This document shows, piece by piece, positions 8,977 through 52,918 of a stretch of DNA of 64,000 nt. The translations under genes and the position numbers were made by a program. The stretch is taken from positions 62,001 to 126,000 of IMG/VR virus record IMGVR_UViG_3300020473_001965; one strand, given 5' to 3'. Numbering within the stretch: the stretch's first letter is position 1; each line of letters starts with the position of its first letter. The notes beneath the pieces were generated by a model. That model ran no database searches. It was given only the letters and a program-made list of their open reading frames with translations, and was not told the origin of the DNA.

Positions 8977-9195
8977 TTAACTCTCCTTACTTTTTAATTC
9001 TACCACAACTTGGCTGGCGTTACATAAAATTTCAATATCATCACACCAGGTATTTGATATCACACCATTCGACCATAGAATTGAAACTGATGGTGGTATT
9101 TCTACATCTCGCCTTACTTCTAGTACTATGCCCGTTCCGTCTTCAACACCACAGAAAGTGTCATAAACTAAAACTCCCGGTTCTATTTTATTCAT
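8977..9195 (-). CDS. Small SH3-like protein
   Basis: IEPGVLV...GIVLEV...ILWSNG. Confidence 0.55.
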   Translation of the reverse strand: MNKIEPGVLVYDTFCGVEDGTGIVLEVRRDVEIPPSVSILWSNGVISNTWCDDIEILCNASQVVVELKSKES

Positions 9196-9794
9196 TGTAG
9201 TGCCAAAATCTTCTTCTTAATAGTCTTCTTAATCCCAGGATTAATTTGCTCCACGTGAGGCATCATAACATGACGAATATAGTTTCGACGATATCTCGTA
9301 TCCACGTTGGTTACATCTTCTACAAATGGGACGCCCTTCCTCGTGCACCACTTGATCAAGTCATCCTTATCTGTAGAAAGAAAAGGCCTGATGTACTGAT
9401 CACGCTTGTGTGGTATTAAGAACGGATTGCCATTGAGGCTTGTAAAGATCCAGTTCTCCACTACATCGCCCAGATGGTGTGCGGTGATGATTGGTAGGTT
9501 AGTTGTGGTTTCAAACCAATCATATCTTTTTTTTCTCCACCAGGCTTCAGATGAAACACCTTCGGGCATCAGGTCTGTATTCCACCCAAACTTGCTCTGA
9601 AGGTTATGCTTGTCTGCGTATTCTTTTACTAGCTGTGTTGCTTTGTCTGCGTGCGCACCGGTGCCATGATTAAAATGCAAAACAGTTACTTCTCGTGTTC
9701 TACGAAGAAAGTCAAGAACTGCCATCGAATCGACGCCGCCGCTAACAGCGATCGATACTTTTTGTGGAACAGCGCCTAAAATTCGAATCATCAC
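9192..9794 (-). CDS. tilS: tRNA(Ile)-lysidine synthase-like PP-loop ATPase (N-terminal domain only)
   Basis: SGGVDS, HFNHG, TAHHLGD..E, IRPFL, D.TN....YRRNYIRH. Confidence 0.8.
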   Translation of the reverse strand: MMIRILGAVPQKVSIAVSGGVDSMAVLDFLRRTREVTVLHFNHGTGAHADKATQLVKEYADKHNLQSKFGWNTDLMPEGVSSEAWWRKKRYDWFETTTNLPIITAHHLGDVVENWIFTSLNGNPFLIPHKRDQYIRPFLSTDKDDLIKWCTRKGVPFVEDVTNVDTRYRRNYIRHVMMPHVEQINPGIKKTIKKKILALQ

Positions 9795-9810
9795 TTATCT
9801 CCTAGTTTAT

Positions 9811-9839
9811 ATTCTAACACACTATGCAGTGTTTTACAC
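9811..9839 (-). promoter_or_regulatory. Class I promoter GTGTAA-N17-TAGAAT
   Basis: Read directly from sequence, upstream of tilS. Confidence 0.6.
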
Positions 9840-10029
9840 TAGAAGTTAGTCTGGGTGCACAGGGTTATAGTAGCCGCCGCGGCGCCTACGAGCCATCTGC
9901 TCATATGACAGTATCGTTATTGCGATAATAGAAACACCGAAAGCTAACAAGTCCATGGCATTTTTTTTAATCTTTCGCTTACACATTATATTATTTTATA
10001 CTGCGTAGATTGATAGTGTATAAATCTCA

Positions 10030-10245
10030 CTAGACTGAAGAGATCACATGAATCTGTGACGCTTCGTCATCCAATTGAAGTGTGCAGAAAACGTCATCTG
10101 TAGAGAGTACTGTGACTTTATCACTGTCTATGTCAAGAACTATCCCTTGCTTTGGTTGAACATTCATCTCAATCATGACGCGTTCTTTGAGCGGGTTGTA
10201 CACAGTGTAGCTTCCTGAAAACACTACTAGATCTCCCTTGTTCAC
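10030..10245 (-). CDS. Small SH3-like protein
   Basis: MNKGDLVVF...GIVLDI. Confidence 0.55.
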   Translation of the reverse strand: MNKGDLVVFSGSYTVYNPLKERVMIEMNVQPKQGIVLDIDSDKVTVLSTDDVFCTLQLDDEASQIHVISSV

Positions 10246-10424
10246 TGGTACACCTCAAACTTGTGCCGGTCAGCACTGTCAAAGATTACTTCTCTCACAC
10301 CATTGATATCTCTTTGAGCGCTCACTCTAAACTGGAACCCTTCATCGACAAAACAATAGACTAGCTCACCCAATTCAAACGTGTTTGTTTTAGCTATTAC
10401 CCTAAGAACTTTTCCAGCATACAT
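10242..10424 (-). CDS. Hypothetical protein
   Basis: ORF overlapping the next start by 4 nt. Confidence 0.5.
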   Translation of the reverse strand: MYAGKVLRVIAKTNTFELGELVYCFVDEGFQFRVSAQRDINGVREVIFDSADRHKFEVYQ

Positions 10425-10440
10425 CTTCCACCACTATTAA

Positions 10441-10466
10441 TGTGACGGGCCCGAAGGCCCGTCACA
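10441..10466 (-). terminator. Hairpin terminator after hsp20
   Basis: TGTGACGGGCC-cgaa-GGCCCGTCACA perfect 11-bp stem (TTCG loop on the minus strand), 7 nt after the stop. Confidence 0.75.
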
Positions 10467-10473
10467 AATAACT

Positions 10474-10956
10474 CTAAGCAATCTCAATTTTTCTTGTTTT
10501 CGGTTCCGAGTTGTCAGGTACTACCTTTGGAATCTCCAAGGATAGAATACCGCTTTCAAATCCTGCGGAAATCTTCTTACTATCTAGATTGTCGTTTAGA
10601 GTAAAACTACGTCTAAATGAAGACCTCTTGATCTCTCTCTTTACATATTGAGAATCTGTGACACCTTCATTCTGATTGCTTGTTCCTACAATTGACAACA
10701 CCCCGTCTGTTACTTCAACGTTAATATCTTCTTTAGATAGGCCTGGAATTGCAGCTTCAATTAAAATATGGTCTTCGTGATTTATCACATTTACTTTAGG
10801 GTAGCTCCCCTTGGAAAAGAACTCATCCCCAAACTCCCGATGAAATGCCGGGAACATGTCTGTTAACATATCGTCAAATAGACGATCAAATGGAGTTAAA
10901 AACTCCCTCTTGGTCAGAGAACGTGGATTAACACGTCTACGAATAATTGCACTCAT
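10474..10956 (-). CDS. Small heat-shock protein Hsp20/alpha-crystallin
   Basis: YPKVNV, AIPGLSKEDINVEV.DGVL, F.RSFTL, A.FESGIL.LEIPK. Confidence 0.92.
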   Translation of the reverse strand: MSAIIRRRVNPRSLTKREFLTPFDRLFDDMLTDMFPAFHREFGDEFFSKGSYPKVNVINHEDHILIEAAIPGLSKEDINVEVTDGVLSIVGTSNQNEGVTDSQYVKREIKRSSFRRSFTLNDNLDSKKISAGFESGILSLEIPKVVPDNSEPKTRKIEIA

Positions 10957-11033
10957 GATTTATCTCCTATGTTTATGCTTACCTGAAATCAGTGTAAGTG
11001 CCGGTTGTTCACTAGTGATCCAACCGTAATATT

Positions 11034-11062
11034 AATATAAACACAGGAGTAGGGTTGTACAC
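11034..11062 (-). promoter_or_regulatory. Class I promoter GTGTAC-N17-TATATT
   Basis: Upstream of hsp20. Confidence 0.55.
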
Positions 11063-11071
11063 CCCCTTAAT

Positions 11072-11695
11072 TTAACTTTTTTGATATGGTGCGTTCAATA
11101 AGCTGTCTACAACATCCTGAAGGTGTACTTTGATCGCATCGTAAACAAGTGAGCGTGCTTCATCATGAAAGCTTGCCTCACCAGGCCCGCCTAAATCTTC
11201 AGCTGCAACCTGAAGGACCGGTATCATCGCATCGCGAAGTGCTGCCTTATTCTCTTCACCAAACAGCGGGGCAATTGCATCAGAGAGTGCTTGAGTGTGC
11301 TGCGCTCGCAAGACGCTGAGACCTCCTTCGGGCACAGCCATGTGGCTTATCTCTTCCTTAATAATCTGTCTAAGCTGTCGTCTTGTAATTTTGATTGTTG
11401 ACTCTGTGTATCTTTCAATCCTTTTTCCTGACGGTATGGACTCTGGTTCCATATCAGCCAGCGAGTCTAAACTATAAGGAATGTTTGCTCTGCTTCCTGG
11501 ACCTCCGGTAATCATGTCTAATATGTCGTCAAGCTCATCTTGATTATAGGCAATTTCAGATTGAGCCCTACCGTTTAAATCATATCCCACCACAATGGGA
11601 AATTCAGCATCAGCAATGTTCTTCCCAAGATTATGCCTTGGATGTGCCATTTCTTCTTCAATAATCTTTCTAAGCCGGGATTTTGTAATTTTCAT
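11072..11695 (-). CDS. Leader-tagged protein with two leader copies
   Basis: MKITKSRLRKIIEEE and internal IKITRRQLRQIIKEE. Confidence 0.75.
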   Translation of the reverse strand: MKITKSRLRKIIEEEMAHPRHNLGKNIADAEFPIVVGYDLNGRAQSEIAYNQDELDDILDMITGGPGSRANIPYSLDSLADMEPESIPSGKRIERYTESTIKITRRQLRQIIKEEISHMAVPEGGLSVLRAQHTQALSDAIAPLFGEENKAALRDAMIPVLQVAAEDLGGPGEASFHDEARSLVYDAIKVHLQDVVDSLLNAPYQKS

Positions 11696-11839
11696 TTTAT
11701 TTTCTCGCGGTGGTCTTTACTCATATCTAAAATCTCATGAATCATTATCGATCGTTTAATCATTGTCTCTAAAATTATTTGAACAACCCTTACTTTCAGC
11801 ATCTTCTGCATAGAAATATATATTACCGAGCCCTGAATT

Positions 11840-12550
11840 ATGCAGCACATCAAAGACCTTAATGTAGAAAGAATAAGAGTTATTACAGTTGCGAAGGTCG
11901 CTAGTTCCGCATTCTCTCACTCTCTCAGTGACAAATATAAGACTAGTCATGGACACTCACTAGCGCTTCTTAAAAAGTGTCTAGAAGAAGAAGAAAACAC
12001 TCTTGTCATCTCAGGCATTAGAAATCCTCTTGCGAGAAATCTATCATACTTTTTCCAAACGTATTCAGACGTCGGGCGCAATGATGTAAAATGCAAGTCA
12101 AATAAATACAAGGGTGAAAAGTGCTATGTTATGGAAAAAGATAAAATATTAAGTTTAAGCACAGAAGAGGTCGTCCAAAAATTCTTTGATCAAAAATGGC
12201 ACAACACTTTTAATGATTGGTTTGAAGAGTTTTTTGAAATCACAGATATCGATGTAGTCTCATTTGATAAAGAATCTGGGTATCAGCTCTACTCACTAGA
12301 CAATAACAACTGGATTCTATTCTATACTTTTGAAATGTTTTCAAAGAACAAGTCAAAATTTGAGAGATTCTTTGATATTAAAAGACTCGCGCACACAAAC
12401 AATGCAGACAAGAGAATTTATGGCGAAGTATATAGAAGCGTAAAAGCATCAATTAAATTCCCTAAGTCATACAAACAAAAGTTACTCAACACAGAAATTA
12501 TCAATCGATTCTACAGTAAAAGTGATATTCAGAAGTTCTGGGCCATGTGA
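11840..12550 (+). CDS. Putative capsular-polysaccharide-synthesis (NKWYS-like) / sulfotransferase-fold protein
   Basis: AKVASS..., IRNPLARNLSYFFQ, WFEE; plus-strand gene inside a minus-strand array. Confidence 0.55.
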   Translation: MQHIKDLNVERIRVITVAKVASSAFSHSLSDKYKTSHGHSLALLKKCLEEEENTLVISGIRNPLARNLSYFFQTYSDVGRNDVKCKSNKYKGEKCYVMEKDKILSLSTEEVVQKFFDQKWHNTFNDWFEEFFEITDIDVVSFDKESGYQLYSLDNNNWILFYTFEMFSKNKSKFERFFDIKRLAHTNNADKRIYGEVYRSVKASIKFPKSYKQKLLNTEIINRFYSKSDIQKFWAM

Positions 12551-12753
12551 TGAAATTTAAAATTTCTGATCACGCTCTAGCAGTTCCTGACATGCAAGTA
12601 GGTGATCTTGTCAAGATAGGTCGCATCGGCAAAGAATACGGCTTGATCCTCAGCATTCATGACTCGAAAAGCATTATTCAAGTATACTGGCCAGAAAGCA
12701 ATGAAATAGGCTGGGAGAAATGCGTTAGAATGATTGTTGTATCTAGAGCCTAA
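12547..12753 (+). CDS. Small SH3-like protein
   Basis: QVGDLVKI...YGLIL...VYWP. Confidence 0.5.
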   Translation: MMKFKISDHALAVPDMQVGDLVKIGRIGKEYGLILSIHDSKSIIQVYWPESNEIGWEKCVRMIVVSRA

Positions 12754-14744: not shown

Positions 14745-14754
14745 GTCTTACTCC

Positions 14755-15540: not shown

Positions 15541-15556
15541 TTTGCTTCCTTTGACC

Positions 15557-16627: not shown

Positions 16628-16770
16628 TGTGATAAACTCCCTATGAATCCCATTACCATTACTACAACAAATACTGTTAATGGTATCATTGCTGCTGCCA
16701 TCATACCTAAATCTTTTGGTGTGACTCCTCGATGATCCATCCAGTCTTTGAGTTTTTTTATTGGCTTCAT
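16624..16770 (-). CDS. 48-aa membrane protein (below ORF-track cutoff)
   Basis: MKPIKKLKDW...MIPLTVFVVVMVMGFIG; 4-nt overlaps on both sides. Confidence 0.55.
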   Translation of the reverse strand: MKPIKKLKDWMDHRGVTPKDLGMMAAAMIPLTVFVVVMVMGFIGSLSQ

Positions 16771-16892
16771 TTCTTCTTGTCCTTGTTTTTCTTGACAGGG
16801 ACGGGCTGAAGCGCTGGCTGCAATCCCAGCAAAGCTGCTAGATCATCAATAAATTCGCTCACCTTGGCTCGAATGTCATCAAAGATTTTCAT
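16767..16892 (-). CDS. 41-aa hypothetical protein (below ORF-track cutoff)
   Basis: MKIFDDIRAKVSEFIDDLAALLGLQPALQPVPVKKNKDKKK*. Confidence 0.5.
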   Translation of the reverse strand: MKIFDDIRAKVSEFIDDLAALLGLQPALQPVPVKKNKDKKK

Positions 16893-16897
16893 TTTAT

Positions 16898-17580: not shown

Positions 17581-17589
17581 TTTTATCCT

Positions 17590-18083: not shown

Positions 18084-18089
18084 GATATC

Positions 18090-20603: not shown

Positions 20604-20632
20604 ATTATAAACAGTGCAGAGGAACGTTACAC
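20604..20632 (-). promoter_or_regulatory. Class I promoter GTGTAA-N17-TATAAT
   Basis: Read directly from sequence. Confidence 0.65.
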
Positions 20633-30698: not shown

Positions 30699-30727
30699 AT
30701 TATAAACACAATTAGAAGAATTTACAA
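30699..30727 (-). promoter_or_regulatory. Class I promoter TTGTAA-N17-TATAAT
   Basis: Read directly from sequence. Confidence 0.6.
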
Positions 30728-34616: not shown

Positions 34617-34692
34617 TGGAGCGGGTGATGGGACTCGAACCCACAACGTACAGCTTGGAAGGCTGTCACTCTACCAGTTGAGTTACACCCGC
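34617..34692 (-). tRNA. tRNA-Gly (TCC)
   Basis: GCGGGTGTAACTCAACTGGTAGAGTGACAGCCTTCCAAGCTGTACGTTGTGGGTTCGAGTCCCATCACCCGCTCCA; cloverleaf with CCA. Confidence 0.95.
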
Positions 34693-34701
34693 AATTCGTC
34701 G

Positions 34702-35130
34702 CTATTCTTGAATATCTACAAGCTCTATTTCAAAATTTAAAGTTTTCCCTGCAAGCGGGTGATTAAAGTCGATAACAGCTTCTTCGTCTGTGAAAGAGCT
34801 GATTACTCCTCGGAACGTTCCCGTCTCATTTTGTGCCTGAACTACTCCGCCTACAGCAAATTCCATCTCTTCAGGAAACTGGGTCCTGGGAACAGTTGCA
34901 ACTGCTTGTTCGTCAATGGGTCCGTAAGCATTGTCAGGTTCGATTGTAACATTTTTCACTTCTCCTACTTGCATTCCTAAAAGCGCAGAATCAAATCCTC
35001 CAATAACTCTACCCTCGCCTACCTGAAATTCTAGAGGCATTTCTCTATCATAAGAGTTATCAAACTCCATTCCATCATCGAGTGTTCCTCGATAGTGAAC
35101 GCTAACTGTATTTCCGTTTTCTACTTTCAT
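34702..35130 (-). CDS. FKBP-type peptidyl-prolyl isomerase (SlyD/SlpA-like)
   Basis: VSVHYRGTLDDG.EFDNS, AYG, DFNHPLAGKTLNFEIEL. Confidence 0.92.
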   Translation of the reverse strand: MKVENGNTVSVHYRGTLDDGMEFDNSYDREMPLEFQVGEGRVIGGFDSALLGMQVGEVKNVTIEPDNAYGPIDEQAVATVPRTQFPEEMEFAVGGVVQAQNETGTFRGVISSFTDEEAVIDFNHPLAGKTLNFEIELVDIQE

Positions 35131-35172
35131 TTTTCCTTCTTTCTTTTGTGCATTTTGCACGGTTATTAGTGC

Positions 35173-35415
35173 TTAACGCACAACTTTTAGTTTTTCTACC
35201 CAGACTGGCAAAGATAACTCGGACCGACCAGATCCGTAAATTGCACTCTCTGGTACTTTGAATGGTACTAGTTCGTCTGAACCGCCTACCCAGTGCAATC
35301 TATCTGCAACTACATCGAACAAGAGTGTTTCTTGATCTTCAGTGGGATAATAGAACCCGTTGTAGCCGCGCTTGCTCATTCGAACTGTGTCACCTTTTTT
35401 GATTGTAATTTTCAT
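35173..35415 (-). CDS. Small SH3-like protein
   Basis: IKKGDTVRM. Confidence 0.5.
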   Translation of the reverse strand: MKITIKKGDTVRMSKRGYNGFYYPTEDQETLLFDVVADRLHWVGGSDELVPFKVPESAIYGSGRSELSLPVWVEKLKVVR

Positions 35416-35425
35416 TTGATGCTCC

Positions 35426-35794
35426 TCAGCAACCTTTTAAAACGTCTATTTCTTCCCAGGCACCCTGCCAGTTTGTGTACCTGACTTTAGCTATCCCAGC
35501 CTTTTTCATCTCTTGCATGCAGAGATAACATGGGCGTGCCATTGTCCATCGATGATCATGCTTTGTAAATCTAATAACTTCAATTTCATCTCCCGGTTTT
35601 GCAAATCTCAATACATTCATTTCTGCGTGCATGTGCGAAGCCCATGTACCATCCTCATATTGTCGCTTAAACCTTGGGTGAGTCTTATCAGTATTTTCAC
35701 CTATCTTCACGACCTTGCCTTTTCTTCGTAAGATAGCAGCCAAATGATAGGTTCTACCATTGCTGATCGCTTTTTCTTTAGCTCGATAGTACAC
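35426..35794 (-). CDS. Zn-dependent deaminase (cytidine/dCMP deaminase fold)
   Basis: HAE and ARPCxxC motifs. Confidence 0.75.
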   Translation of the reverse strand: MYYRAKEKAISNGRTYHLAAILRRKGKVVKIGENTDKTHPRFKRQYEDGTWASHMHAEMNVLRFAKPGDEIEVIRFTKHDHRWTMARPCYLCMQEMKKAGIAKVRYTNWQGAWEEIDVLKGC

Positions 35795-35815
35795 TTGGCA
35801 TGATGCCCTCCTTAG

Positions 35816-35903
35816 TGGCGGAAGCGGTGAGATTCGAACTCACGATACGTTTCCGTATGCCGGTTTTCAAGACCGGTGCCTTAAGCCGCTCGGCCACGCT
35901 TCC
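35816..35903 (-). tRNA. tRNA-Ser (TGA)
   Basis: GGAAGCGTGGCCGAGCGG...CTTGAAA...GTTCGAATC...CTTCCGCCA; long variable arm. Confidence 0.95.
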
Positions 35904-35905
35904 AG

Positions 35906-36505
35906 TTAAACTTTCCATAATCCTGACTGATTTCCAATACCAGTCCATCTTGGCCGGACGGTTCGTGAATAGAGATCCAAGTATGGACCTTTGCTTCTTT
36001 CCTCAACAAAAGAGTAAAATTCTTCAGGCTTTCGAGAATGCTGTCGCCTCTGAGCGAAAATATAATCCTTAGAACCGCACAGACCCTTTCCGTTGGGAAC
36101 TGACTCTTTCTCATTTGTCCCTGAATACCTTGTTCTTTTTCCCATTCCCTTTCGATATCTTACAGCAAAAATACACATCTCAGTGTATCTCATTCCGTAC
36201 GGGGTAGGGCTTCCCACATTTGACTTTACCCATGGGATCAAGCTGATTGGTTTGAAACCTAGCGCATCACAAACTTCAAGCGCAGGTAAAATCCCTTGAT
36301 CTTTCCCAGCTGTAAATGAATTAACTGTCCACATGTACATATGGGCTTCAGGAGCGACAGGATGCTTCTTAAACCACTCTGATATCGTGCAAATTATCTC
36401 GCCCTTAGACTGAACATTGTAATGAGTCGAAGGTTGTAAAGTTGCATGACCCACACCCCCTGTGGTCTTTCTCCAAGGTGGGTCTATTACGATAGTTTTA
36501 TACAT
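35906..36505 (-). CDS. MT-A70-family N6-adenine methyltransferase
   Basis: IVIDPPW, HSRKPEEFY, LDLYSR..R..W...GNQ. Confidence 0.85.
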   Translation of the reverse strand: MYKTIVIDPPWRKTTGGVGHATLQPSTHYNVQSKGEIICTISEWFKKHPVAPEAHMYMWTVNSFTAGKDQGILPALEVCDALGFKPISLIPWVKSNVGSPTPYGMRYTEMCIFAVRYRKGMGKRTRYSGTNEKESVPNGKGLCGSKDYIFAQRRQHSRKPEEFYSFVEERSKGPYLDLYSRTVRPRWTGIGNQSGLWKV

Positions 36506-36520
36506 AGCTTATCCATAAAA

Positions 36521-36596
36521 TGGCTCCCCGAGCAGGACTTGAACCTACGACCCGCTGATTAACAGTCAGCTGCTCTACCAACTGAGCTATCGGGGA
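36521..36596 (-). tRNA. tRNA-Asn (GTT)
   Basis: TCCCCGATAGCTCAGTTGGTAGAGCAGCTGACTGTTAATCAGCGGGTCGTAGGTTCAAGTCCTGCTCGGGGAGCCA. Confidence 0.95.
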
Positions 36597-38705: not shown

Positions 38706-38984
38706 TTAGTCAATTTCTGTAATCATTTCTGCAACAGCACTCTGAAACGCTGGGTGAATTGCCACGCTCTTAAGATTATCTGGTGAGCAGTCCTGACCGT
38801 AGAGTACACATACTTCTCTTGCGATCTTTGTCAAGCCCTTGACAAAAACATTTCTCGCTGTTGCATGATTCATCTTGTGACCTTCTTCTGTCATCTTTTC
38901 AGCAATAGACCGATAATCCATTCCAGACAAATCATTTACAGTTGCATAGCCTCGCTCAATCTTAGTTCCTTTAGGCATTGACAT
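38706..38984 (-). CDS. HTH protein resembling a detached sigma region 4.2
   Basis: MDYRSIAEKM...MNHATARNVFVKGLTKIA aligns by eye to TLEEVG...VTRERIRQIEAKALRKL. Confidence 0.6.
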   Translation of the reverse strand: MSMPKGTKIERGYATVNDLSGMDYRSIAEKMTEEGHKMNHATARNVFVKGLTKIAREVCVLYGQDCSPDNLKSVAIHPAFQSAVAEMITEID

Positions 38985-39746
38985 TTATTTTCCCTCCATG
39001 AGTTTCATATATTTTTCTTTAGAGATTGGATAATCAGAATGATTTGTGCTGTCCTCAGTAATTCCGAATCTAAGCCTGATTATCTTTTCTTCCCTAGAAG
39101 TCAAGCATCGCAAACCTTTGCGAACAGCTCCGGTAATTTTTTCCTTGTCCAGAATATCATCTAAGTGTGTAGCATCACTATCAGGGACGATATCTTCAAG
39201 GGTCCCGGATTCATCTTTCCCAATCGGCCGGCTAAGTGACGTTGTATTGGTCGGCGCTTGCAAAGCATCTTCAATCAACGAAGTTGTCACGCCTAAGATA
39301 TCAGCAAGTTCTTCTTTAGTTGGGGCTGAACCGAATTCATCCTCATACTCTTCAGAGACATTTTTGATCTTAGATAGTAGACCTCGAGCGTGAGATGGAA
39401 TTCTAATAGTCGACGTGTTTGCTGTAACATGTCGGCGAACTGACTGACGAATCCACCAAGTTGCATACGTAGAAAAACGAAAGCCTCGACGCCAATCGAA
39501 TTTCTCAACAGCTTTCATCAAGCCAATGTTAGATTCTTGAATCAGATCAGAAAGATCACATCCAAAATGCTGATATTTCTTAGCGATGCTCACAGCTAGT
39601 CGCAAGTTTGACTCGATCAACTTCCTTCTAGCTTCGGGGTCACCTGCCTCGATTCTCTTTGAGAGTTCTACTTCTTCATCTTTGGTAAGAAGTTTAGACT
39701 TCCCAGCTTCTTTAAAGTAAACGTTAAGTAAGTTAGACACAAACAC
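38985..39746 (-). CDS. RpoD/RpoS-like sigma-70 factor, truncated after region 4.1
   Basis: [57 protein letters not shown] then ends. Confidence 0.9.
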
Positions 39747-39781: not shown

Positions 39782-39811
39782 ATTTTACCACAAAAAATCT
39801 AGCTCTTACAC
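39782..39811 (-). promoter_or_regulatory. Class I promoter GTGTAA-N18-TAAAAT upstream of the sigma gene
   Basis: Read directly from sequence; extended -10 TG. Confidence 0.55.
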
Positions 39812-39815: not shown

Positions 39816-40073
39816 CTAACGAGTATTTTTATATCTACGGGACGTCTGCTTTAGATACTCTGCATGGCGGATCTTTCTGATCTTTCGCCACTCAGACTCT
39901 CGTTGAGCGTAGCAAAGCTCCACCTGGGCGCCCATACCATCGCGGCGCCGAGCGGCTGTTCTAAGCGCGTCGATCTTTCGATCGATTTGCTCATCACTCA
40001 TATCATTCAAAACTTCACGTGTCAAAGCTCTATGCATCAAGCATCTCCTCTTTAAGCTTTTATATAATACCAT
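39816..40073 (-). CDS. Basic hypothetical protein
   Basis: ORF with AGAGG RBS before internal LMHRAL; promoter GTGTAC-N17-TATTAT at 40064-40092. Confidence 0.5.
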   Translation of the reverse strand: MVLYKSLKRRCLMHRALTREVLNDMSDEQIDRKIDALRTAARRRDGMGAQVELCYAQRESEWRKIRKIRHAEYLKQTSRRYKNTR

Positions 40074-40091
40074 AAGGGAGCGAGATGTACA

Positions 40092-40457
40092 CTAAATTGT
40101 CATCATATCAAACAAAGTTTTGATGACAAGGCCGACGACCACTGATGACGTCATCCATAGGAACTTTTGATAAGATCTGGACCTTGCTTTTATCAGAGTA
40201 AAATCTTCAACGAGGTTCTCAGGAATCATTTGAGAACAGTTCTCTAGTTTTGCTTCAAGTAAGGCTAGTCGCGTTTCCTGAGAGTTTGTAACAGACTTTA
40301 GCTCTTCAAAGCCTGCTTCAAGCTTTTGAACACTTAATGACAGTGAGTCTAACTTGGTGTCTACACCAGCAGCAAGGATCTTTATTTCAGTTAAAGAATC
40401 TTGTAGTTTTGCAACCCACGCTTCATCAGCAGACATCGTGTTATCTCCCATTAACAA
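40092..40457 (-). CDS. Coiled-coil protein with C-terminal transmembrane segment
   Basis: Heptad pattern followed by FLWMTSSVVVGLVI. Confidence 0.55.
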   Translation of the reverse strand: MLMGDNTMSADEAWVAKLQDSLTEIKILAAGVDTKLDSLSLSVQKLEAGFEELKSVTNSQETRLALLEAKLENCSQMIPENLVEDFTLIKARSRSYQKFLWMTSSVVVGLVIKTLFDMMTI

Positions 40458-40969: not shown

Positions 40970-43367
<2,398 letters not shown>

Positions 43368-43370
43368 AAA

Positions 43371-43410: not shown

Positions 43411-43442
43411 ACAGAATTAGAAATGTTTGTTAATGACAGTAG

Positions 43443-43847: not shown

Positions 43848-43893
43848 TGTCTCCTTGTAGTATTAAATATAACGCACAGACAGTTTTTTCTAC

Positions 43894-44658
43894 CTAAACT
43901 CCTGCAAGAATGAACTTATATTTCTTATCTGCGTCTTGCCAGTATTCAGTTTTGTCGATAATTGTCTGCATTTTTTTAGAATGTCTTGACATCCTAGTCT
44001 CAAGACCTTTGGTGAGACGCTCTCTCTTCTTCACAGCGTTTTCACTGCAGCCCCAAATCTTTTTGTTTGTGCTAGCGACGTCCTGATATGCTGCATAGGC
44101 TGCATTAAAAAATCTTGCGGCTTGCTTGTTAATTTCGATCTCATTCATTACCTGAACGTCACCATGTAGTACTACAGATTTTTTCATTCCAACGTGTTTC
44201 TTCATCTTAACTTTTCCTCGGGCTCCTGGCGCCTCATCAGAAAAGTCATTTATTGTCAGACCCTCGAAAAACAAAACATTAAAAGATTGAAAATCGGGTG
44301 CAGCAAGAACATACAAATAATCAAGCGATCCTTTTTTCTTTAAAGTACTGTAATCTGTCTGGAAGCTATAACCTCCCTTTGGGCGCCGAGTGGTTATTTT
44401 ACACTCAAGCTCTTTGCCTAGTGAAGGTATGACAATGTCAGGCTGGCCGGTTGCTCCGTCTGAAATCGCATCTTTAAAATAACTTGCTATCTCGTCTGCA
44501 AAAAACTTCTCTTGAGCAGCTGACATGATTATGTTTCTTCGTCCGGTGTTTTGAACAAAATCGAGTCCGTACTCCTCATGAAGAGACAACTGCTTATCGT
44601 GAAAGCTTTTCATTTTAGCCAACGCTTTTACGACCATTTCTTTAGTAATATAACTCAT
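43894..44658 (-). CDS. Putative PD-(D/E)xK endonuclease
   Basis: QE...GQPDIVI...ELECK; promoter TTGTAA-N17-TATAAT at 44683-44711. Confidence 0.55.
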   Translation of the reverse strand: MSYITKEMVVKALAKMKSFHDKQLSLHEEYGLDFVQNTGRRNIIMSAAQEKFFADEIASYFKDAISDGATGQPDIVIPSLGKELECKITTRRPKGGYSFQTDYSTLKKKGSLDYLYVLAAPDFQSFNVLFFEGLTINDFSDEAPGARGKVKMKKHVGMKKSVVLHGDVQVMNEIEINKQAARFFNAAYAAYQDVASTNKKIWGCSENAVKKRERLTKGLETRMSRHSKKMQTIIDKTEYWQDADKKYKFILAGV

Positions 44659-44717
44659 ATGACACTCCTAGCATACAACTATATTATACACAAAGAGTTT
44701 CAATTTTACAATTATTA

Positions 44718-45107: not shown

Positions 45108-45169
45108 CTCTTAAAACTTATAAATCATACATCGAGGTTTTTAGAAGTTAATATATTATAGCGTTTAAT

Positions 45170-46936: not shown

Positions 46937-47030
46937 TCAACAATAAATATTACGCACTGCTAACAATTACACAGAATATAGATTTGTACATTAAACAATT
47001 TTTTTGTATAATTCATCAAAAGAGGTTTGT

Positions 47031-47780: not shown

Positions 47781-47828
47781 CAAAAAATAGTTCTAAAGTC
47801 GCATACTTATAAAAAGAGGTATGCGCTC

Positions 47829-48554
47829 TTGAGACAGATTAAAATCATAGTGGTAACACTATTAGCCGGTGTGGCGATATACACTGGCTACGCCTTCTTT
47901 AATCATGGACATCAAGATGAATCTCAAGAAAAACAACAACAAAGCTATGTAACTGAAGAAGCTGTTGTTGATTTAGAGTTTATTGATCATCAGGCGTCTT
48001 ACGCAGAAATAGCGTCTAGAAAGTCATCGGTACAAGTACACAACCCGGATTTTCGAGGTTTTGGCTCTGGTACATATTTTGTACAAAAGGGCCGCCATTT
48101 TATACTGACAGCTGCACACGTCGTAGACGATAAAGAGCACATGATGATCTCAGGCAGAGATGAGATTGTGCCCGGGCGCGTGGTTTATACAAATCCGGCT
48201 ACTGATATTGCCGTCATAGAAGTCGATAAAATGAATACACGTGATCCTGTGCGTCTTCGTGTCAATGGTAACCCACACGTGGGTGATGCGGTTGCATACA
48301 CTGGCTTTCCGAACGGTACAGATCTATTAACCATCACGGGAAGAATTAGCGGCTATAGGGGCAGCTGGGTTGTTATTCAAAGTTATACATGGATGGGTGC
48401 ATCAGGAAGCGGCGTTTTTGACTCCAGAGGAAGGCTTGTTGGCGTTGTCTCAATGGTAGAAATTGGCCATTACAGAGCGCCCCAAGTTATTGAAGATGTT
48501 GGTTATGTTGCTAAAATATCTGAAGCTGATGTGCGAGGAATTAGAGGGTTGTGA
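47829..48554 (+). CDS. Membrane-anchored trypsin-like serine protease
   Basis: N-terminal TM, LTAAHVV, DIAVI, GASGSGVFD. Confidence 0.88.
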   Translation: MRQIKIIVVTLLAGVAIYTGYAFFNHGHQDESQEKQQQSYVTEEAVVDLEFIDHQASYAEIASRKSSVQVHNPDFRGFGSGTYFVQKGRHFILTAAHVVDDKEHMMISGRDEIVPGRVVYTNPATDIAVIEVDKMNTRDPVRLRVNGNPHVGDAVAYTGFPNGTDLLTITGRISGYRGSWVVIQSYTWMGASGSGVFDSRGRLVGVVSMVEIGHYRAPQVIEDVGYVAKISEADVRGIRGL

Positions 48555-48582
48555 GCGTTGACATAAAATAGGAGGGTCTAAA

Positions 48583-49467
48583 ATGTCTTCGGGTGTTAAA
48601 TTGCTGTTGTTGTTAGCCAGTCTTGGAATTGTTGGCTGCACATCTGACTACGCAGTTTCAGAAACAAAAGAAGTAAGAGTGGTCGTTGACTCTTACGTTC
48701 AAGCAGATCAGCTTGAAGAACTTGACGTTCTTGTTGTTTTAGACACATCTGGATCAATGCACGACAATTATGAAGATGTCGCTGACGGTATGGAAATACT
48801 AAGAACAGATATTGAGTCTTTGACTCTTGATTATCAGTTCGGTTACATTACCATGGATCCCACTCGATTGTCTTACGTGGGACCGTATGACTCTTCTTCT
48901 ACAGCAATTGACATGCTTATGGCTCCAAGCCTTCTTCCTTCTACAATATTAGAGGAGGGGTTCGGAGCCACATACACTTTTTTGGAGTCAGAGGAAGGAT
49001 TAGCCTTCAGGCGACCCGAAGCGGATTTTCTTTTGTTCTTGATTTCTGATGAAGACGAGCAGAGTGCGATATCCTCTGATCTATTCTATGACTGGTTGCA
49101 TGATGAGTTTAAAGACGTAAATCATGATGTTGTGTCTATAGTAAACCCTGATGATGAAAACGCATCTTGGGCACATGAAATAGGTTATAAGTACATTGAC
49201 CTCGCAAACCTTTATGGTAAAGATGTTCTTGACATAAAAGCAGAAGACTGGTCAATATGGCTATCAGACTCTTCATATTTAACACAGCTGCAAGACACTA
49301 TTGCACTAACTGAGACCTATCCCATTGTTGAATCAATTGTCGTCTATGTTGATCAAGTAGCTATCTATAATTGGAACTACATTGAAGAAACGAATGTCAT
49401 CAAGCTAGGTGACGTTCCCGATTACGGGTCTGTAGTAGAGGTGGGGTACAATGTATATGTGGACTAG
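48583..49467 (+). CDS. vWA-domain lipoprotein
   Basis: Lipobox IVGC; VLDTSGSM MIDAS; ISDEDEQS. Confidence 0.8.
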   Translation: MSSGVKLLLLLASLGIVGCTSDYAVSETKEVRVVVDSYVQADQLEELDVLVVLDTSGSMHDNYEDVADGMEILRTDIESLTLDYQFGYITMDPTRLSYVGPYDSSSTAIDMLMAPSLLPSTILEEGFGATYTFLESEEGLAFRRPEADFLLFLISDEDEQSAISSDLFYDWLHDEFKDVNHDVVSIVNPDDENASWAHEIGYKYIDLANLYGKDVLDIKAEDWSIWLSDSSYLTQLQDTIALTETYPIVESIVVYVDQVAIYNWNYIEETNVIKLGDVPDYGSVVEVGYNVYVD

Positions 49468-51073
49468 ATTACTGCTTTCTTCTTTTGTTGTGCTATCGAT
49501 AGGTTGCAGCAGTGATTATGAGATAAGCAAATATGTTGAGCCGCCAGAGCCGGGCGTCACTGCACCTGAAATAGAAGTTGACCCTACACATCATAGTTAT
49601 GGTGCACTAAGCGCTGGCAGTGAGACCCAAGACATTGTCATCAATATTGAAAACATCGGCAATGACGATCTAGACGTTTCAAACATTTACTTGCATAACG
49701 GTGATTCCAACTTCACATTATCTACAATGCCGATTGGTATCGTAGAATCGCTAGGATCTGTAGAACTTATTGTCACGTATGCGCCTGGAACATACGAAAC
49801 TAATCACGAAACTATTAGTATTATTTCTAACGATGAAGACGAACCGGTTGTAAATGTAACACTAGATGGTTCCGGCGACGCACCTGTCATCACTATCACA
49901 CCAGACTACCACGATTTTGGAGATGTCTATATAGGCTGTGACGATACACTTCCAATAGAGGTAGGAAATATTGGAAATTCAAATCTTATAATTGATGATA
50001 TTGAGTTTTTTGCTAGTCTCCCTGTTGATTTTTCTATGCAAGACTATGAACCAGACTGGGGAGTTCTTCCTATTACTATTTCGCCTGGTGACACTATCAA
50101 TCTTAACGTAGACTATATGCCGCTAGATGTTTTAGACGATGCTGCTTACCTCGAAATCTCGTCAAATGATCCGGCGACGCCTACTGCTCATGCTGATCAA
50201 GACGGTCTCGGAGAAGTGGAAGCTTGGATTACTGATTCTTTTAATCAAGACGGAACCGTTGATGTTGATATACTATTTGTCATTGACAACTCTGGTTCAA
50301 TGGGGTCTAACCAGACTAACATTAAAAACAACTTTGACGCCTTTATGAATGCTTTTAACGCAGCTGGTGTGTCCTATCAAATGGCACTTATCACTACGGA
50401 TAGTGCTGATTTTGTAGGTGATGTTATTACAAACGCAACAGTTGATCCCGTCACTGAATTCAACAATCAGATTGACTCTATTGGTACACGCGGAAGTGCT
50501 TATGAGAAAGGCCTGTGGTTTGCATACGAGTCAACAACAACAGGTGACGCATCTTCAAGCAGCCCCACTGGATTTTTTAGATCAGACGCAAGACTAGTAG
50601 TTGTATACGTTTCTGATGAGCCTGACTTTTCACACCAGACTTACGGAAGCGGTGGGTCTACAACCATGGTTCCCGCTGATTATTCAGCATCTCTTTTGTC
50701 TCTTAAGAGCTCTTCTGATCTAGTCACAGCGCATGCAATCGCAGGCGATTACCCGTCTGGCTGCACTTCTAATGGAGGCGCTCAGTTTGGTGACGGATAT
50801 TATGATGTTGTAACTGATCTTGGTGGAACGTTTATGTCAATATGTGCTGCTGACTGGAGTGTAACAATGGATACACTCGCAAGAGAATCACTGGCTCAAC
50901 TAGGATTTGCACTTTCAGACACACCGATTGAAGACACTATAACAGTTACAGTCGACGGTGTTCTGTCATCAGACTGGTCATACGAAGCCTCATCAAATAC
51001 TGTTATTTTCACAACAGCACCTGCCGACGGCAGCACCATTGATATTAATTACGGTGTATGGGGTTGCGACTAA
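49451..51073 (+). CDS. Lipoprotein with two Ig-like (ASH / choice-of-anchor D-like) repeats and a vWA domain
   Basis: Lipobox SIGC; two (E/G)NIGN..L..I repeats ending SND; ILFVIDNSGSM; VSDEPD. Confidence 0.8.
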   Translation: MYMWTRLLLSSFVVLSIGCSSDYEISKYVEPPEPGVTAPEIEVDPTHHSYGALSAGSETQDIVINIENIGNDDLDVSNIYLHNGDSNFTLSTMPIGIVESLGSVELIVTYAPGTYETNHETISIISNDEDEPVVNVTLDGSGDAPVITITPDYHDFGDVYIGCDDTLPIEVGNIGNSNLIIDDIEFFASLPVDFSMQDYEPDWGVLPITISPGDTINLNVDYMPLDVLDDAAYLEISSNDPATPTAHADQDGLGEVEAWITDSFNQDGTVDVDILFVIDNSGSMGSNQTNIKNNFDAFMNAFNAAGVSYQMALITTDSADFVGDVITNATVDPVTEFNNQIDSIGTRGSAYEKGLWFAYESTTTGDASSSSPTGFFRSDARLVVVYVSDEPDFSHQTYGSGGSTTMVPADYSASLLSLKSSSDLVTAHAIAGDYPSGCTSNGGAQFGDGYYDVVTDLGGTFMSICAADWSVTMDTLARESLAQLGFALSDTPIEDTITVTVDGVLSSDWSYEASSNTVIFTTAPADGSTIDINYGVWGCD

Positions 51074-52347
51074 CCCACGTAAAGAGGCACTGGTAGCGGC
51101 TTTTCTTTTCCTCTAGACTTAGAAAAAGCTGGATTTACCATACCTAAAATCTGATTTACTGGTGCAAACGCTCCCGTAATCTTATAAGACATTCGTTTAT
51201 TTGGTAACGTAAAAACCACACCCTCGACAGTTGATGTTATAGTAAACACATCATTAGATAACTTCTCATAATTCATTGCCAAGGTATTAAGAGTTTTCTC
51301 TGACTCATTTTCTTTTCTTACTTTTTCTACAGCCGTCGCGACCTTCGTCCTCAATGCCTTAACCTGATCTTCTCCGTTGTCGACAAAAATGGAATGAGAG
51401 TTTTCAAGCAATCCTATGCCAAACTTATTGATAATCATCTCTAGCGGCATGATAATTTTTCGGACAATTGAAGATCTAGACCTAGCGATATCAGACAAAG
51501 CACTTCTGACTGCAGGATTTAGTGTTTTAACGATTGAAGGTGTGGGCCTTGTTCGAGGCACATCAAGCATTCTATTTAGAAACTCATTTTCAATTTCAGA
51601 TGGCAACGTGTACTGCTTTAGATAATCTAAAGTAATCTGGTTTTCTAAGTACACGCTGATTGTATCTTCATCTTCTAAGTGATTCTTTACCATAAAATCT
51701 TTTAGAAGAAACAATGCTTCGTTCATTTTTTCTTTGTTTGCTGTCTTTGCCAAACTTATAGGGGTAGGCCCCTTAATTGTCCAAAACTTATCAGTAAAGG
51801 GTGATTTGACAACAGCACCAGACATTGCCTTTACAACTTTGTCAAACGTCTCAGGACATGCAGTCCCTAGTGAAGTGCCTTCTTGATATCTTGTAACACC
51901 GTGCATAACAAGATAGTTTCTATTGTATGTGATAACATTTGGATTATCAGTAGACATCACCTCAAGATTGACAAATGGAATGCCCCCTTGATCTTTATCA
52001 AAGATCTGGAATCGGTTGTAGTACACCAAATCAGACACAGATAGATTGAAAGCTGAGAGTGCGTCAGTAAATGCTTCTTTTACAAGCGTCTTTGTAGCGT
52101 ATCGCTTTTCAAGTTGTTTTCTATCAACACCTGACTTTTTGATGTCAGTCTTGTTTCGTGCCGCGTAAGATGCATGCCCTCTTGGGTCATGAGTTAACGA
52201 AAGATTTTGTCCGTCGACTTTCTCGTATAGGGTTATTTTATTCTGAATAATTGATTCTAGAACTGATCTTAGTTCTCCAAAAGTTAGGTTATAATCTTCA
52301 TAAAGATGATTGAGGTGACCACTATCGTTTCCACCAAGTCCACCCAT
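51070..52347 (-). CDS. Phage protein with ligase-like KxDG motif
   Basis: HLNHLYED, EKVDGQN, EGVVF, YKITGAFAPVNQILG. Confidence 0.55.
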   Translation of the reverse strand: MGGLGGNDSGHLNHLYEDYNLTFGELRSVLESIIQNKITLYEKVDGQNLSLTHDPRGHASYAARNKTDIKKSGVDRKQLEKRYATKTLVKEAFTDALSAFNLSVSDLVYYNRFQIFDKDQGGIPFVNLEVMSTDNPNVITYNRNYLVMHGVTRYQEGTSLGTACPETFDKVVKAMSGAVVKSPFTDKFWTIKGPTPISLAKTANKEKMNEALFLLKDFMVKNHLEDEDTISVYLENQITLDYLKQYTLPSEIENEFLNRMLDVPRTRPTPSIVKTLNPAVRSALSDIARSRSSIVRKIIMPLEMIINKFGIGLLENSHSIFVDNGEDQVKALRTKVATAVEKVRKENESEKTLNTLAMNYEKLSNDVFTITSTVEGVVFTLPNKRMSYKITGAFAPVNQILGMVNPAFSKSRGKEKPLPVPLYVG

Positions 52348-52656
52348 TTAATCCTCCGATTCTTCAATTAACTCTATTTGACCTGTGCTTAAACCGTACC
52401 TGTGAGCTTTTTTCTTAAGTTCTCGCAGGGACTCCATACATCTTGTAATTCGATCTCTTTCTTTCCTATCTGTTCTTGAAAGTTGCTTTCTAACATTGTT
52501 CAACTCAGACAGCAAAGTATCATATACATTCACATGCGATGAAGAGCCAAAAGAAAGCTCTTCATTTTCAGTTGTTAGAAAAGTCTTGTTCTCATTTAAA
52601 GATAAGAAACTTTCTCTAAGAAAAGTTCTCAATAACTTGTTTTTCTGGTCAGACAT
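52348..52656 (-). CDS. Leader-like hypothetical protein
   Basis: KLLRTFLRESFLSLNE. Confidence 0.55.
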   Translation of the reverse strand: MSDQKNKLLRTFLRESFLSLNENKTFLTTENEELSFGSSSHVNVYDTLLSELNNVRKQLSRTDRKERDRITRCMESLRELKKKAHRYGLSTGQIELIEESED

Positions 52657-52675
52657 TCGTCACCTCCAGATATAA

Positions 52676-52867
52676 CTATAGCTTAAAAGTCTCTTCTTTA
52701 TTAATAGCTGTATTTAACGATCCATAAAAGAACATTCGTATATGATCATCACTAACGGGTTGATCTGTCTTTAGATCAAATGCTTCGCGGATCTTATCAA
52801 GAAAACCCTTTTTGAATTCAACTTCTAAAATCTTCCCATTTGGAAGCTCAATATTTCTTTGTTCCAT
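52676..52867 (-). CDS. Hypothetical protein
   Basis: Promoter ATGTAA-N17-TATAAT at 52874-52902. Confidence 0.55.
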   Translation of the reverse strand: MEQRNIELPNGKILEVEFKKGFLDKIREAFDLKTDQPVSDDHIRMFFYGSLNTAINKEETFKL

Positions 52868-52918
52868 AATCGTATTATACCCTATTCTTTGACGGTTTAC
52901 ATAAAAAAATATATTTTT

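Follow-up and report, generated by a model that had tools for sequence, protein, structure and literature searches.

The genome of an uncultivated marine jumbo phage (IMG/VR record IMGVR_UViG_3300020473_001965, 235 kb) carries a series of promoter-like sites that raise the question of which protein reads their -35 box. We studied them in a window of 64,000 nucleotides covering positions 62,001 to 126,000 of the record; coordinates are those of the window unless given as genome positions.

Promoters with an unusual -35 box

A preliminary description of the window listed ten sites of the form DTGTAM-N17-TAnnnT, placed them just upstream of gene starts and suggested that they may be targets of a split sigma factor. 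We recovered all ten, with their strands, at the following positions (matrix scores in bits, from a weight matrix built on the sites):

8997..9025, minus strand: promoter ATGTAA-N17-TAGAAT with extended -10 (TGg), score 25.8; the gene for a 5'-3' exonuclease/FEN (8176-8976) has its ATG 20 nt downstream
9811..9839, minus strand: promoter GTGTAA-N17-TAGAAT with extended -10, score 26.8; a PP-loop ATPase gene (9192-9794; Pfam PF01171) lies about 19 nt downstream
11034..11062, minus strand: promoter GTGTAC-N17-TATATT, score 18.3; an Hsp20 gene (10474-10956; Pfam HSP20) lies 77 nt downstream
20604..20632, minus strand: promoter GTGTAA-N17-TATAAT, score 20.6; a small ORF (to 20379) has its ATG 15 nt downstream
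30699..30727, minus strand: weaker candidate TTGTAA-N17-TATAAT, score 11.6
39782..39811, minus strand: promoter GTGTAA-N18-TAAAAT with extended -10 (TGg); 35 nt to the sigma gene
40064..40092, minus strand: promoter GTGTAC-N17-TATTAT with extended -10, score 28.0, much like the early-cluster consensus; 26 nt to the gene heading the sigma operon
44683..44711, minus strand: promoter TTGTAA-N17-TATAAT, score 20.8; 24 nt to the ATG of a 254-aa gene (43894-44658) with no assigned function
46984..47012, plus strand (the sole member on that strand): TTGTAC-N17-TATAAT, score 13.4; 18 nt to the ATG (47031) of a nucleotidyltransferase gene (Pfam and PHROG matches), the first of a four-gene plus-strand block
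52874..52902, minus strand: promoter ATGTAA-N17-TATAAT, score 20.9; only 6 nt separate the -10 from the ATG of a 63-aa ORF, and the transcript may be leaderless

The spacer is 17 nt in nine sites and 18 nt at 39782-39811, as had been described. Placement just upstream of a gene start held for nine of the ten, in which the -10 and the start codon are 6-77 nt apart and an AGGAG-type ribosome-binding site is usually present. It failed for 30699-30727, whose -35 box includes the stop codon of the preceding gene and whose next start (30643 or 30631, 56-68 nt away) has no clear ribosome-binding site. This candidate and the plus-strand site at 46984-47012 have the lowest matrix scores. The leader between the promoter at 11034..11062 and the Hsp20 gene could form a hairpin.

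All ten -10 boxes are of the type TAnnnT with at least four of six matches to TATAAT, and five are exact. The -35 consensus (G/T/A)TGTA(A/C), in contrast, agrees with TTGACA at only 2 to 4 of 6 positions; it is conserved at about 1.8-2.2 bits per position and has no dyad symmetry. The combination of a canonical -10 with an altered -35 was thus borne out, and neither this genome nor 71 related loci showed enrichment of TTGAC at any spacing. We found 12 matches to DTGTAM-N17-TAnnnT in the window, in comparison with 3.36 +/- 1.88 in 100 dinucleotide shuffles of it, none of which reached 12. The matches absent from the earlier list (9288-9316, 51891-51919 and 57201-57229) lie inside ORFs, have poor -10 boxes and look like chance occurrences. 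An unbiased count in the 235-kb record, which did not presuppose the box, ranked TGTAA first among the 5-mers located 17 nt before a near-consensus -10 hexamer (25 versus 2.0 expected, z = 15), with maximal enrichment at N17. The most enriched hexamer of upstream regions was TATAAT (27 versus 4.6 expected). Genome-wide, TGTA[AC]-N17-TAnnnT occurs 45 times, compared with 20 times at N16 and 26 at N18, indicating a preference for a 17-nt spacer. Judged by their sequence, the ten sites are real promoters in which a normal -10 is paired with an unusual TGTAA -35.

The ten sites are only part of the class. At a threshold of at least 14 bits, the weight matrix found 28 places on the minus strand, which is the coding strand, and 1 on the plus strand, compared with 0 in reversed-sequence controls. 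The class has about 30 members in the record, and the earlier list was therefore incomplete rather than wrong. Seventeen members are densely packed among the small genes of an early-looking cluster that lies outside the window (genome 29-46 kb); others precede replication and metabolism genes. The 17 clustered sites have their spacer and downstream sequence in common (TAGTGTAAGAC...GCGTGGTATTATTAGATAGTAAGGA), suggesting that they derive from one cassette, and repeated early-gene cassettes carrying copies of one promoter could in principle inflate the signal of a class that was never selected. We consider this very improbable and, from the sequence comparisons, largely refuted: among the ten window sites, spacers and flanks are unrelated, but the box, the spacing and the -10 are kept, and the box is enriched independently in many distant genomes.

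An extended -10 (TG at -15/-14, TGnTAnnnT) is present in most sites of the early cluster and at 8997, 9811, 39782 and 40064 in the window, whereas the canonical TGn is absent or shifted in the other six window sites. We found no box of this class upstream of the head and portal genes, which implies that another mode of transcription exists. Some upstream sequences in the late region contain -10-like boxes without a TGTAA box. Neither k-mer enrichment nor inspection revealed a convincing second motif upstream of genes beyond genome 126 kb, and no second motif class linked to the -10 was found in this genome; one late-promoter candidate, TGTAGTCTT, was discarded as it occurred only 2 times.

A truncated sigma factor and its small neighbor

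Two of the promoters stand before an operon with the following genes:

39816..40031, minus strand: small conserved gene heading the sigma operon, the likely start being the ATG near 40031
38985..39746, minus strand: phage sigma factor of 253 aa, RpoD-like, with regions 1.2, 2, 3 and 4.1 (Pfam r1_2, r2 and r3)
38706..38984, minus strand: 92-aa helix-turn-helix protein, a candidate separate 4.2 subunit, beginning right after the sigma stop codon

The translation and an alignment to RpoD place the C-terminus of the sigma factor at the first helix of the 4.2 helix-turn-helix, leaving the -35 recognition helix missing. The protein is 41% identical to RpoD of the enterobacterial type, the alignment ending at TDHTLEEVGKQ, and its Pfam r4 match is weak and covers only profile positions 2-20; the 11-residue segment reading the -10 is identical to that of enterobacterial-type RpoD. 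It is the only gene with a sigma region 2 in the record, where we found no other region-4 domain and, at E <= 1, no AsiA homologue. Nucleotide and protein searches found no close relative of the window among GenBank phages; the sigma protein matched mostly distant sequences or bacterial rpoD there, and the 92-aa protein matched none. The sigma factor of Vibrio phage 2.275.O was considered as a case of the same module and rejected as a full-length protein of 399 aa.

The small gene heading the operon has no Pfam or PHROG match, and its longer ORF (to 40073) overlaps the promoter at 40064..40092. Homologous small ORFs are found upstream of sigma in loci L004-L012, L019, L034 and L037, and in the relatives, too, a promoter of this class precedes the corresponding gene.

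Only one helix-turn-helix gene, that of the 92-aa protein, was seen traveling with sigma. It adjoins the truncated sigma gene or overlaps it by 1 nt in the window and in loci L003-L013, and lies one or two genes away in L019, L034 and L037; the pair is kept across phages of 34-58% GC with sigma identity down to 38%. The relative frame of the two genes varies from locus to locus, indicating two polypeptides instead of one frameshifted gene, and for the same reason we rejected readthrough or frameshifting as a way of joining the two. The small-protein family comprises 981 clusters, all of about 90-109 aa and from metagenomes, none from cultured phages. Among 185,579 species genomes, its profile matched a single 17.7-kb MAG contig labeled Planctomycetia, probably a mis-binned phage contig. 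In the putative recognition helix (HATARNVFVKGLTKIA), residues T42, A43, R44 and N45 are invariant in 32 sequences.

By every sequence and fold measure used, the 92-aa protein resembles region 4 only weakly. Pfam Sigma70_r4_2 matched 4 of 12 family members (best E 3.5e-4), and the protein-language-model neighbors were all small viral Sigma70_r4 proteins (0.81-0.87). A profile-profile comparison with RpoD region 4 (hhalign) was not significant (E 0.36), fold matches were to LuxR/GerE/NarL-type domains (Z 3.2-3.7), and neither a PDB sequence search nor Foldseek gave a significant match. The predicted complex of sigma residues 190-253 with the 92-aa protein reached an ipSAE of 0.62, the best of three controls being 0.00; 51 of 78 solved complexes and 2 of 108 mismatched pairs score that high. 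Contacts agreed between runs by at least 68%, and the pLDDT of the partner was at least 68. The model packs the helix-turn-helix of the small protein against sigma 203-229 (region 4.1), and the 92-aa protein is thus predicted to dock on the 4.1 helices where 4.2 would sit; R44 and N45 fall outside the interface and are predicted to be free for DNA contact.

The box in related phages

We counted 5-mers at N17 on the sense strand of 71 distinct loci containing the small gene (1.34 Mb). TGTAA (89 versus 7.2 expected), TGCAA (61 versus 10.2), TGTAC (26 versus 3.2) and GTGTA (68 versus 3.8) were enriched, whereas TTGAC was not (12 versus 7.8), and the antisense strand of the same loci showed no enrichment of these 5-mers. 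Single genomes gave the same signal: TGTAA 43 versus 1.5 expected in G004, TGCAA 10 versus 0.1 in G009 and GTGTA 15 versus 1.1 in G005. In every related phage with enough sequence, the -35 at fixed spacing was TG(T/C)AA and not TTGACA. The spacing itself differs among the relatives (N17, N18 and N19), being 19 nt in G013.

The preliminary description had proposed that the box might co-vary with the recognition helix across related phages, and there it did not fare well: we saw no clean pattern, and the T or C at position 4 tracks neither the helix nor GC content. An early pairing of TGTAA with 'MNH[AS]TARN' and of TGCAA with '[IV]S[IV]STARN' failed when more loci were added. AT-rich phages with MNHSTARN prefer TGCA and GC-rich ones TGTA, and G010 carries both. 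Occurrences of 'TGTACC...TATATT' upstream of sigma in GC-rich relatives turned out to be false positives within conserved coding sequence; the promoter before sigma in these phages is GTGCAA-N17-TATAGT, located farther upstream.

Candidate readers of the box

The suggestion that the promoters are targets of a split sigma gained from the truncated RpoD-like sigma, the adjacent helix-turn-helix gene, the predicted docking and the family-wide TG(T/C)AA box; reading of the box by a two-piece sigma, not by host sigma-70, is plausible but unproven. We regard a two-piece sigma on the host core as the likeliest reader of the early and middle TG(T/C)AA promoters, a view held with roughly even confidence. 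These promoters consist of a sigma-70-type -10 (TAnnnT, often with TGn) and (c)GTG(T/C)AA 17 nt upstream. The 253-aa protein would provide core binding and -10 recognition, while the product of the translationally coupled next gene would pack its helix-turn-helix on the 4.1 helices, substitute for region 4.2 and read TG(T/C)AA with the invariant T-A-R-N start of its helix. As the sigma operon itself sits behind two promoters of the TGTAA class, at least some members of the class must be started by the host holoenzyme, barring injection of the proteins; we envisage low-level transcription by host sigma-70 via the extended -10, after which positive feedback would amplify the sigma operon. The late structural genes that we checked, having no box, must be expressed some other way. 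Extended to a large, so far uncultivated family of marine jumbo phages, the reading would be that a housekeeping-type sigma is split inside region 4 and that a free subunit of 90-100 aa replaces the 4.2 helix and retargets the core to an orthogonal GTG(T/C)AA, creating a self-amplifying private class of early and middle promoters. We hold this generalization tentatively, with confidence just short of even.

Split sigmas with positive feedback are known from Tn916 (Sig7-8) and SigO-RsoA. Compared with descriptions of such systems, the phage, as seen in its sequence and the predicted complex, would resemble SigO-RsoA of B. subtilis, Sig7-Sig8 of Tn916, gp55/gp33 of T4 and gp33/gp34 of SPO1 in dividing recognition between two small adjacent genes and in redirecting the host core polymerase, and Tn916 Sig7-8 also in placing the genes of the factor behind a promoter that it may read, giving positive feedback. 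It differs in that the larger piece is a group-1, RpoD-like protein with regions 1.2, 2, 3 and 4.1, not a minimal one of the ECF or gp55 type, and in that region 4 itself is interrupted, 4.1 being separated from the 4.2 recognition helix. If a two-piece sigma reads the box, this would be the first natural group-1 sigma split between 4.1 and 4.2, as far as we have searched. Our full-text literature search found no description of the module or the box. Such a sigma would explain how widespread marine jumbo phages seize the host RNA polymerase without encoding a polymerase, offer a direct way to learn what determines -35 specificity and the length of the spacer once 4.2 is untethered and, since the -10 is common with the host and the -35 different, provide a ready-made orthogonal promoter/sigma pair.

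The host could also act alone. These would then be ordinary early promoters read by host sigma-70, the box being a habit of the lineage, and the truncated sigma, alone or together with the small protein in a gp33-like role, would serve promoters without a -35 such as those of late genes. The use of the class by the sigma operon and by the dense early-like cluster of small genes fits this account, as do the absence of the box from the head and portal genes and the late-region -10-like boxes without it. The -10 is near consensus and the -35 retains T and G, the two positions weightiest for sigma-70, a feature that counts against the two-piece reading. T4 gp33 is a precedent for a small region-4 replacer that reads no DNA; the T4 late promoters, however, have no -35, whereas here the box is fixed. 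The extended -10 is frequent among the sites. Extended -10 promoters (TGnTATAAT) function without -35 recognition by region 4.2 of sigma-70, so the box might be dispensable at such sites; many of them could be used by host sigma-70, and they would also suit a truncated sigma. The strong conservation of the box would not be expected if the extended -10 alone sufficed, and the six window sites without a canonical one need a -35 contact.

Phage T5, whose early promoters are read by host sigma-70, is an instructive control, as the same analysis found a -35 variant of its own there (TTGCT, 17 versus 1.0 expected). A phage-specific -35 alone thus does not imply a phage factor. Like the sites studied here, the T5 early promoters form a strong class that combines a consensus -10 with a -35 particular to the lineage (TTGCTT), many of them before small early genes. 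The T5 box, however, keeps TTG at positions 1-3, whereas the box studied here mostly has G at position 1 and has (T/C)AA at positions 4-6; sigma-70 prefers T at position 1 and CA at positions 5-6. Our variant also co-occurs with a phage sigma without its own -35 reader, while T5 is not known to encode a sigma factor. Furthermore, TG(T/C)AA recurs in phages of 30-58% GC, probably with different hosts, and TTGAC is never enriched. With host sigma-70 as the sole reader, the conserved helix of DNA-binding type would be left without a detectable target motif, given the lack of a second -10-linked class. Taken together, we consider reading by host sigma-70 alone doubtful, if a serious contender. Even if it is correct, the motif remains a practical means of locating early and middle transcription units when such uncultivated genomes are annotated.

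Finally, the box might belong to another factor, of phage or host origin, acting, much as MotA does in T4, as a class II activator with host or truncated sigma, the 92-aa protein not being the reader. In T4, the middle-promoter box (a/t)(a/t)(a/t)TGCTTtA, centered near -30, is read by MotA on host sigma-70 remodeled by AsiA. A fixed position overlapping the -35 is typical of class II activators and of sigma appropriation, and the varying box spacing among relatives and the weak region-4 homology of the 92-aa protein are compatible with such an activator. Nevertheless, we consider it improbable: no AsiA homologue was found in the record, no other candidate is linked by synteny, the one helix-turn-helix gene accompanying sigma is that of the 92-aa protein, which is predicted to dock on region 4.1 in place of 4.2, and the box lacks the dyad symmetry seen in the sites of dimeric activators. 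A two-piece sigma would still share with the T4 middle system the joining of a sigma-70-type -10 to a replaced upstream element as a private promoter class, differing from it in that the box, TG(T/C)AA, lies at the normal -35 and the phage brings its own sigma.

Promoters with a TGTA-type −35 box

The preliminary description had proposed ten promoters with a TGTA −35 box in the window, and all were found where and as described. The underlying pattern, DTGTAM-N17-TAnnnT, had 12 matches in the window where 3.36 were expected, a count reached in none of 100 shuffles; three matches beyond the ten sites fell within genes and had poor −10 boxes. Across the whole record, TGTA[AC]-N17-TAnnnT was found 45 times (20 with N16 and 26 with N18), and 29 of the 31 sites whose −10 had at most one mismatch from TATAAT lay on the coding strand. 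With a weight matrix and a threshold of at least 14 bits, we recovered 28 minus-strand sites and 1 plus-strand site, and none in reversed controls. We also computed the enrichment of 5-mers by their distance upstream of near-consensus −10 hexamers, an unbiased test that does not presuppose the box. TGTAA at 17 nt stood out (25 vs. 2.0 expected, z = 15), and the adjoining registers GTGTA, AGTGT, and TAGTG widened the consensus to tTAGTGTAA; TTGAC was enriched at no spacing in this genome.

The IMG/VR record (235,672 bp, linear, GC ~42%, an estimated 87% complete), of which the window covers bases 62001-126000, comes from an uncultivated jumbo phage, with nearly all genes on the minus strand and no close relative of the window among GenBank phages. 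Among its genes are those for GroEL, Hsp20, a 5'-3' exonuclease, a large DNA polymerase, a DnaB-type helicase, a UvsX-like recombinase, the major head protein, and the portal protein, the calls outside the window being crude, greedy ORFs. A second contig (296,665 bp) carries an identical sigma. The window features discussed here are as follows.

Features in the window
10474-10956, minus strand: Hsp20
34617-36596, minus strand: three tRNA genes, Gly-TCC, Ser-TGA, and Asn-GTT
38706-38984: ORF of the small protein, 92 aa, starting directly past the sigma stop codon and containing YRSIAEKM...HATARNVFVKGLTKIA
38985-39746: sigma ORF, 253 aa, the only region-2 sigma match in the record
39816-40031, minus strand: small gene heading the sigma operon, with counterparts upstream of sigma in loci L004-L012, L019, L034, and L037 of IMG/VR
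40970-42556, minus strand: GroEL-type chaperonin, 528 aa, just upstream of the sigma operon

The promoters are densest at genome 29-46 kb, where 17 near-identical members, spaced 0.7-1.5 kb apart, share the consensus TAGTGTAAGAC...GCGTGGTATTATTAGATAGTAAGGA and are followed nearly immediately by a ribosome-binding site; judged by its sequence, this stretch resembles an early region composed of small genes. The window members, whose spacers are unrelated to one another, lie upstream of the exonuclease, a PP-loop ATPase, Hsp20, several small ORFs, and a nucleotidyltransferase; the sigma operon has two promoters of this class, and one member also precedes the DNA polymerase gene. No site scoring at least 14 was found in front of the head and portal genes, and no late promoter motif could be defined from late-region upstream sequences. 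Two late-genome positions beyond the window, 173657 and 206351 (minus strand), share a 17-nt element, TTAATC(T/C)TGTAGTCTT, each copy 13-36 nt ahead of a gene start; these are its only two copies.

Some individual sites have features of their own. The Hsp20 leader (window 10957-11033, minus strand; 77 nt from promoter to start) contains an inverted repeat, ccggttg...caaccgg, a possible RNA thermometer like those known ahead of small heat-shock genes. In the promoter region at window 52867-52902 (minus strand), the ATG of a 63-aa ORF comes just 6 nt after the −10, which would leave the transcript with little or no leader. The record, especially at genome 29-46 kb, is strongly enriched in GC-rich palindromic octamers (CGCCGGCG, 34 vs. 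1.2 expected; also GCCGCGGC and GCGGCCGC), and some of these fall within the spacers of the early-cluster promoters.

A sigma ending inside region 4 and its small neighbor

The 253-aa sigma matches Pfam regions 1.2, 2, and 3, and region 4 over profile positions 2-20 only. It is 41% identical to an enterobacterial-type RpoD, with one identical 11-residue segment, and the alignment stops at phage TDHTLEEVGKQ, which is helix one of the 4.2 helix-turn-helix. Nine residues further on the phage protein terminates, whereas RpoD goes on into the recognition helix. The order of truncated sigma and small gene recurs in loci L003-L013, where GC is 34-56% and the sigmas are 46-63% identical. Because the two genes differ in relative frame from locus to locus, they encode two translationally coupled polypeptides and are not a broken gene; in three larger phages (L019, L034, and L037), sigma and small gene are separated by one or two small genes for membrane proteins. 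In L004, L005, L008, and L010, the small gene is in the frame of sigma behind a single stop codon, and occasional readthrough may yield a fused protein; other relatives have it in another frame. The gene heading the operon, with a motif like EVEYCYL..ELR.RE.R, may be the third member of the transcription module.

The small protein belongs to a family of 981 clusters (E ≤ 0.001), all of ~90-109 aa, unnamed and mostly from marine metagenomes; it had no match among cultured phages and a single one, on a MAG contig, in 185,579 species genomes. Several lines of evidence, each weak and all in one direction, hint that it serves as a region 4.2. Pfam Sigma70_r4_2 was matched by 4 of 12 family members (best E 3.5e-4), the protein of this phage having no Pfam or PHROG match of its own. 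By protein-language-model features, which provide a lead only, its ten nearest named clusters are all small viral Sigma70_r4 proteins (scores 0.81-0.87). The AlphaFold model contains a helix-turn-helix (pLDDT 77), and among the structures that it weakly matches are many DNA-binding domains of the LuxR/GerE/NarL type (Z 3.2-3.7, rmsd 2-3 Å over ~50 residues); PDB sequence search and Foldseek gave no match. Profile-profile comparison placed TARNVFVKGLTKI opposite RIRQIEAKALRKL, the register expected for a recognition helix but with an E of 0.36.

The small protein is also predicted to bind the 4.1 helices of sigma. The modeled complex with sigma residues 190-253 had an ipSAE of 0.62 (best of three controls 0.00). 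Of 78 solved complexes, 51 reached that mark; of 108 mismatched pairs, 2 did, and a minority of neighboring genes pass such a test by chance. Contact agreement between runs was at least 68%, and partner pLDDT at least 68. In the model, the 4.1 helices (sigma 203-229) contact partner residues 20-31, 43-61, and 81-92, and R44 and N45 lie outside the interface.

The box in related phages

Boxes of the same type were found in related phage genomes. In G004 (38% GC), TGTAA was seen 43 times against 1.5 expected, with consensus AAAATGTAAC and again a dense cluster, and in G005 (324 kb, sigma 38% identical) GTGTA was seen 15 times against 1.1. The form in G009/G006 (56% GC) and G002 is TGCAA (10 vs. 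0.1 and 8 vs. 0.2; consensus CGTGCAA), with strand-specific sites (18:0 and 19:1). G010 (L221-L235) has two classes, a clustered one of TGCAA with extended −10, ATCGTGCAA-N17/18-TGGTATAAT, and TGTAAAC-N15-TATAAT without extended −10; a scattered TGAACA-N16 class in the same genome might be host-type. The complete genome G013 (L236-L250) has TTCTGTAAAAAA, in which TGTAA is 19 nt from the −10, not 17. Over 71 distinct loci with the small gene (1.34 Mb), enrichment at N17 on the sense strand was seen for TGTAA (89 vs. 7.2), TGCAA (61 vs. 10.2), TGTAC (26 vs. 3.2), and GTGTA (68 vs. 3.8), compared with 12 vs. 7.8 for TTGAC, and the antisense strand showed no such 5-mer enrichment. The sigma operons of relatives likewise have a promoter of this class upstream. 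The covariation of box and recognition helix suggested as a check did not appear: whether box position 4 holds T or C tracks neither helix sequence nor GC, and both forms are present in G010.

Candidate readers of the box

We favor, at about even confidence, a two-piece phage sigma as the reader, with the phage sigma on the −10 and the small protein on the −35 box. This preference comes from four points: module and box occur together in phages of widely differing GC and, presumably, different hosts; no other upstream element at a fixed spacing is detectable; the start of the second helix of the small protein (T42, A43, R44, N45) is invariant across 32 diverse members and has no other visible target; and a canonical extended −10 is absent from 6 of the 10 window sites, among them 44683-44711 and 52874-52902, unlike 40064-40092, which has one.

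The main rival, which we consider less likely, has host sigma-70 alone reading the sites as early promoters and the truncated sigma serving −35-less promoters, much as T4 gp55/gp33 do. The 5-mer analysis, run on 50 kb of phage T5, gave TTGCT 17 times against 1.0 expected. T5 is read by the sigma-70 of E. coli and is not known to have a sigma gene itself; a −35 variant specific to one lineage thus does not by itself demand a phage-encoded reader. Both the early-like cluster and the operon of the sigma lie behind promoters of just this class, which something present from the start of infection must therefore recognize. Many members do have an extended −10, and such promoters reportedly work without region 4.2. 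Under the two-piece sigma, host sigma-70 would start the loop via the extended −10.

Split sigmas (SigO-RsoA, Tn916 Sig7-8, T4 gp55/gp33, SPO1 gp33/34) are already known, as are promoter classes private to a phage (e.g., T4 middle promoters); no AsiA homologue was found in this record. What would set this phage apart from these systems is the putative division of a group-1 sigma within region 4, combined with a defined −35 box. Our literature searches turned up no description of this arrangement; a comparative jumbo phage review does not have it, although RpoD-like sigmas of phages and homologues of gp33 are mentioned there. Other IMG/VR lineages (L018, L021, L022, L024, L025, L028, L031, L036, L038, and L043) have sigmas of ~225-231 aa that end right after region 4.1 (...REEKI.R.KFG(I/L)SD*), with no recognizable 4.2-like gene adjoining; truncation after region 4.1 seems to be recurrent in phages.
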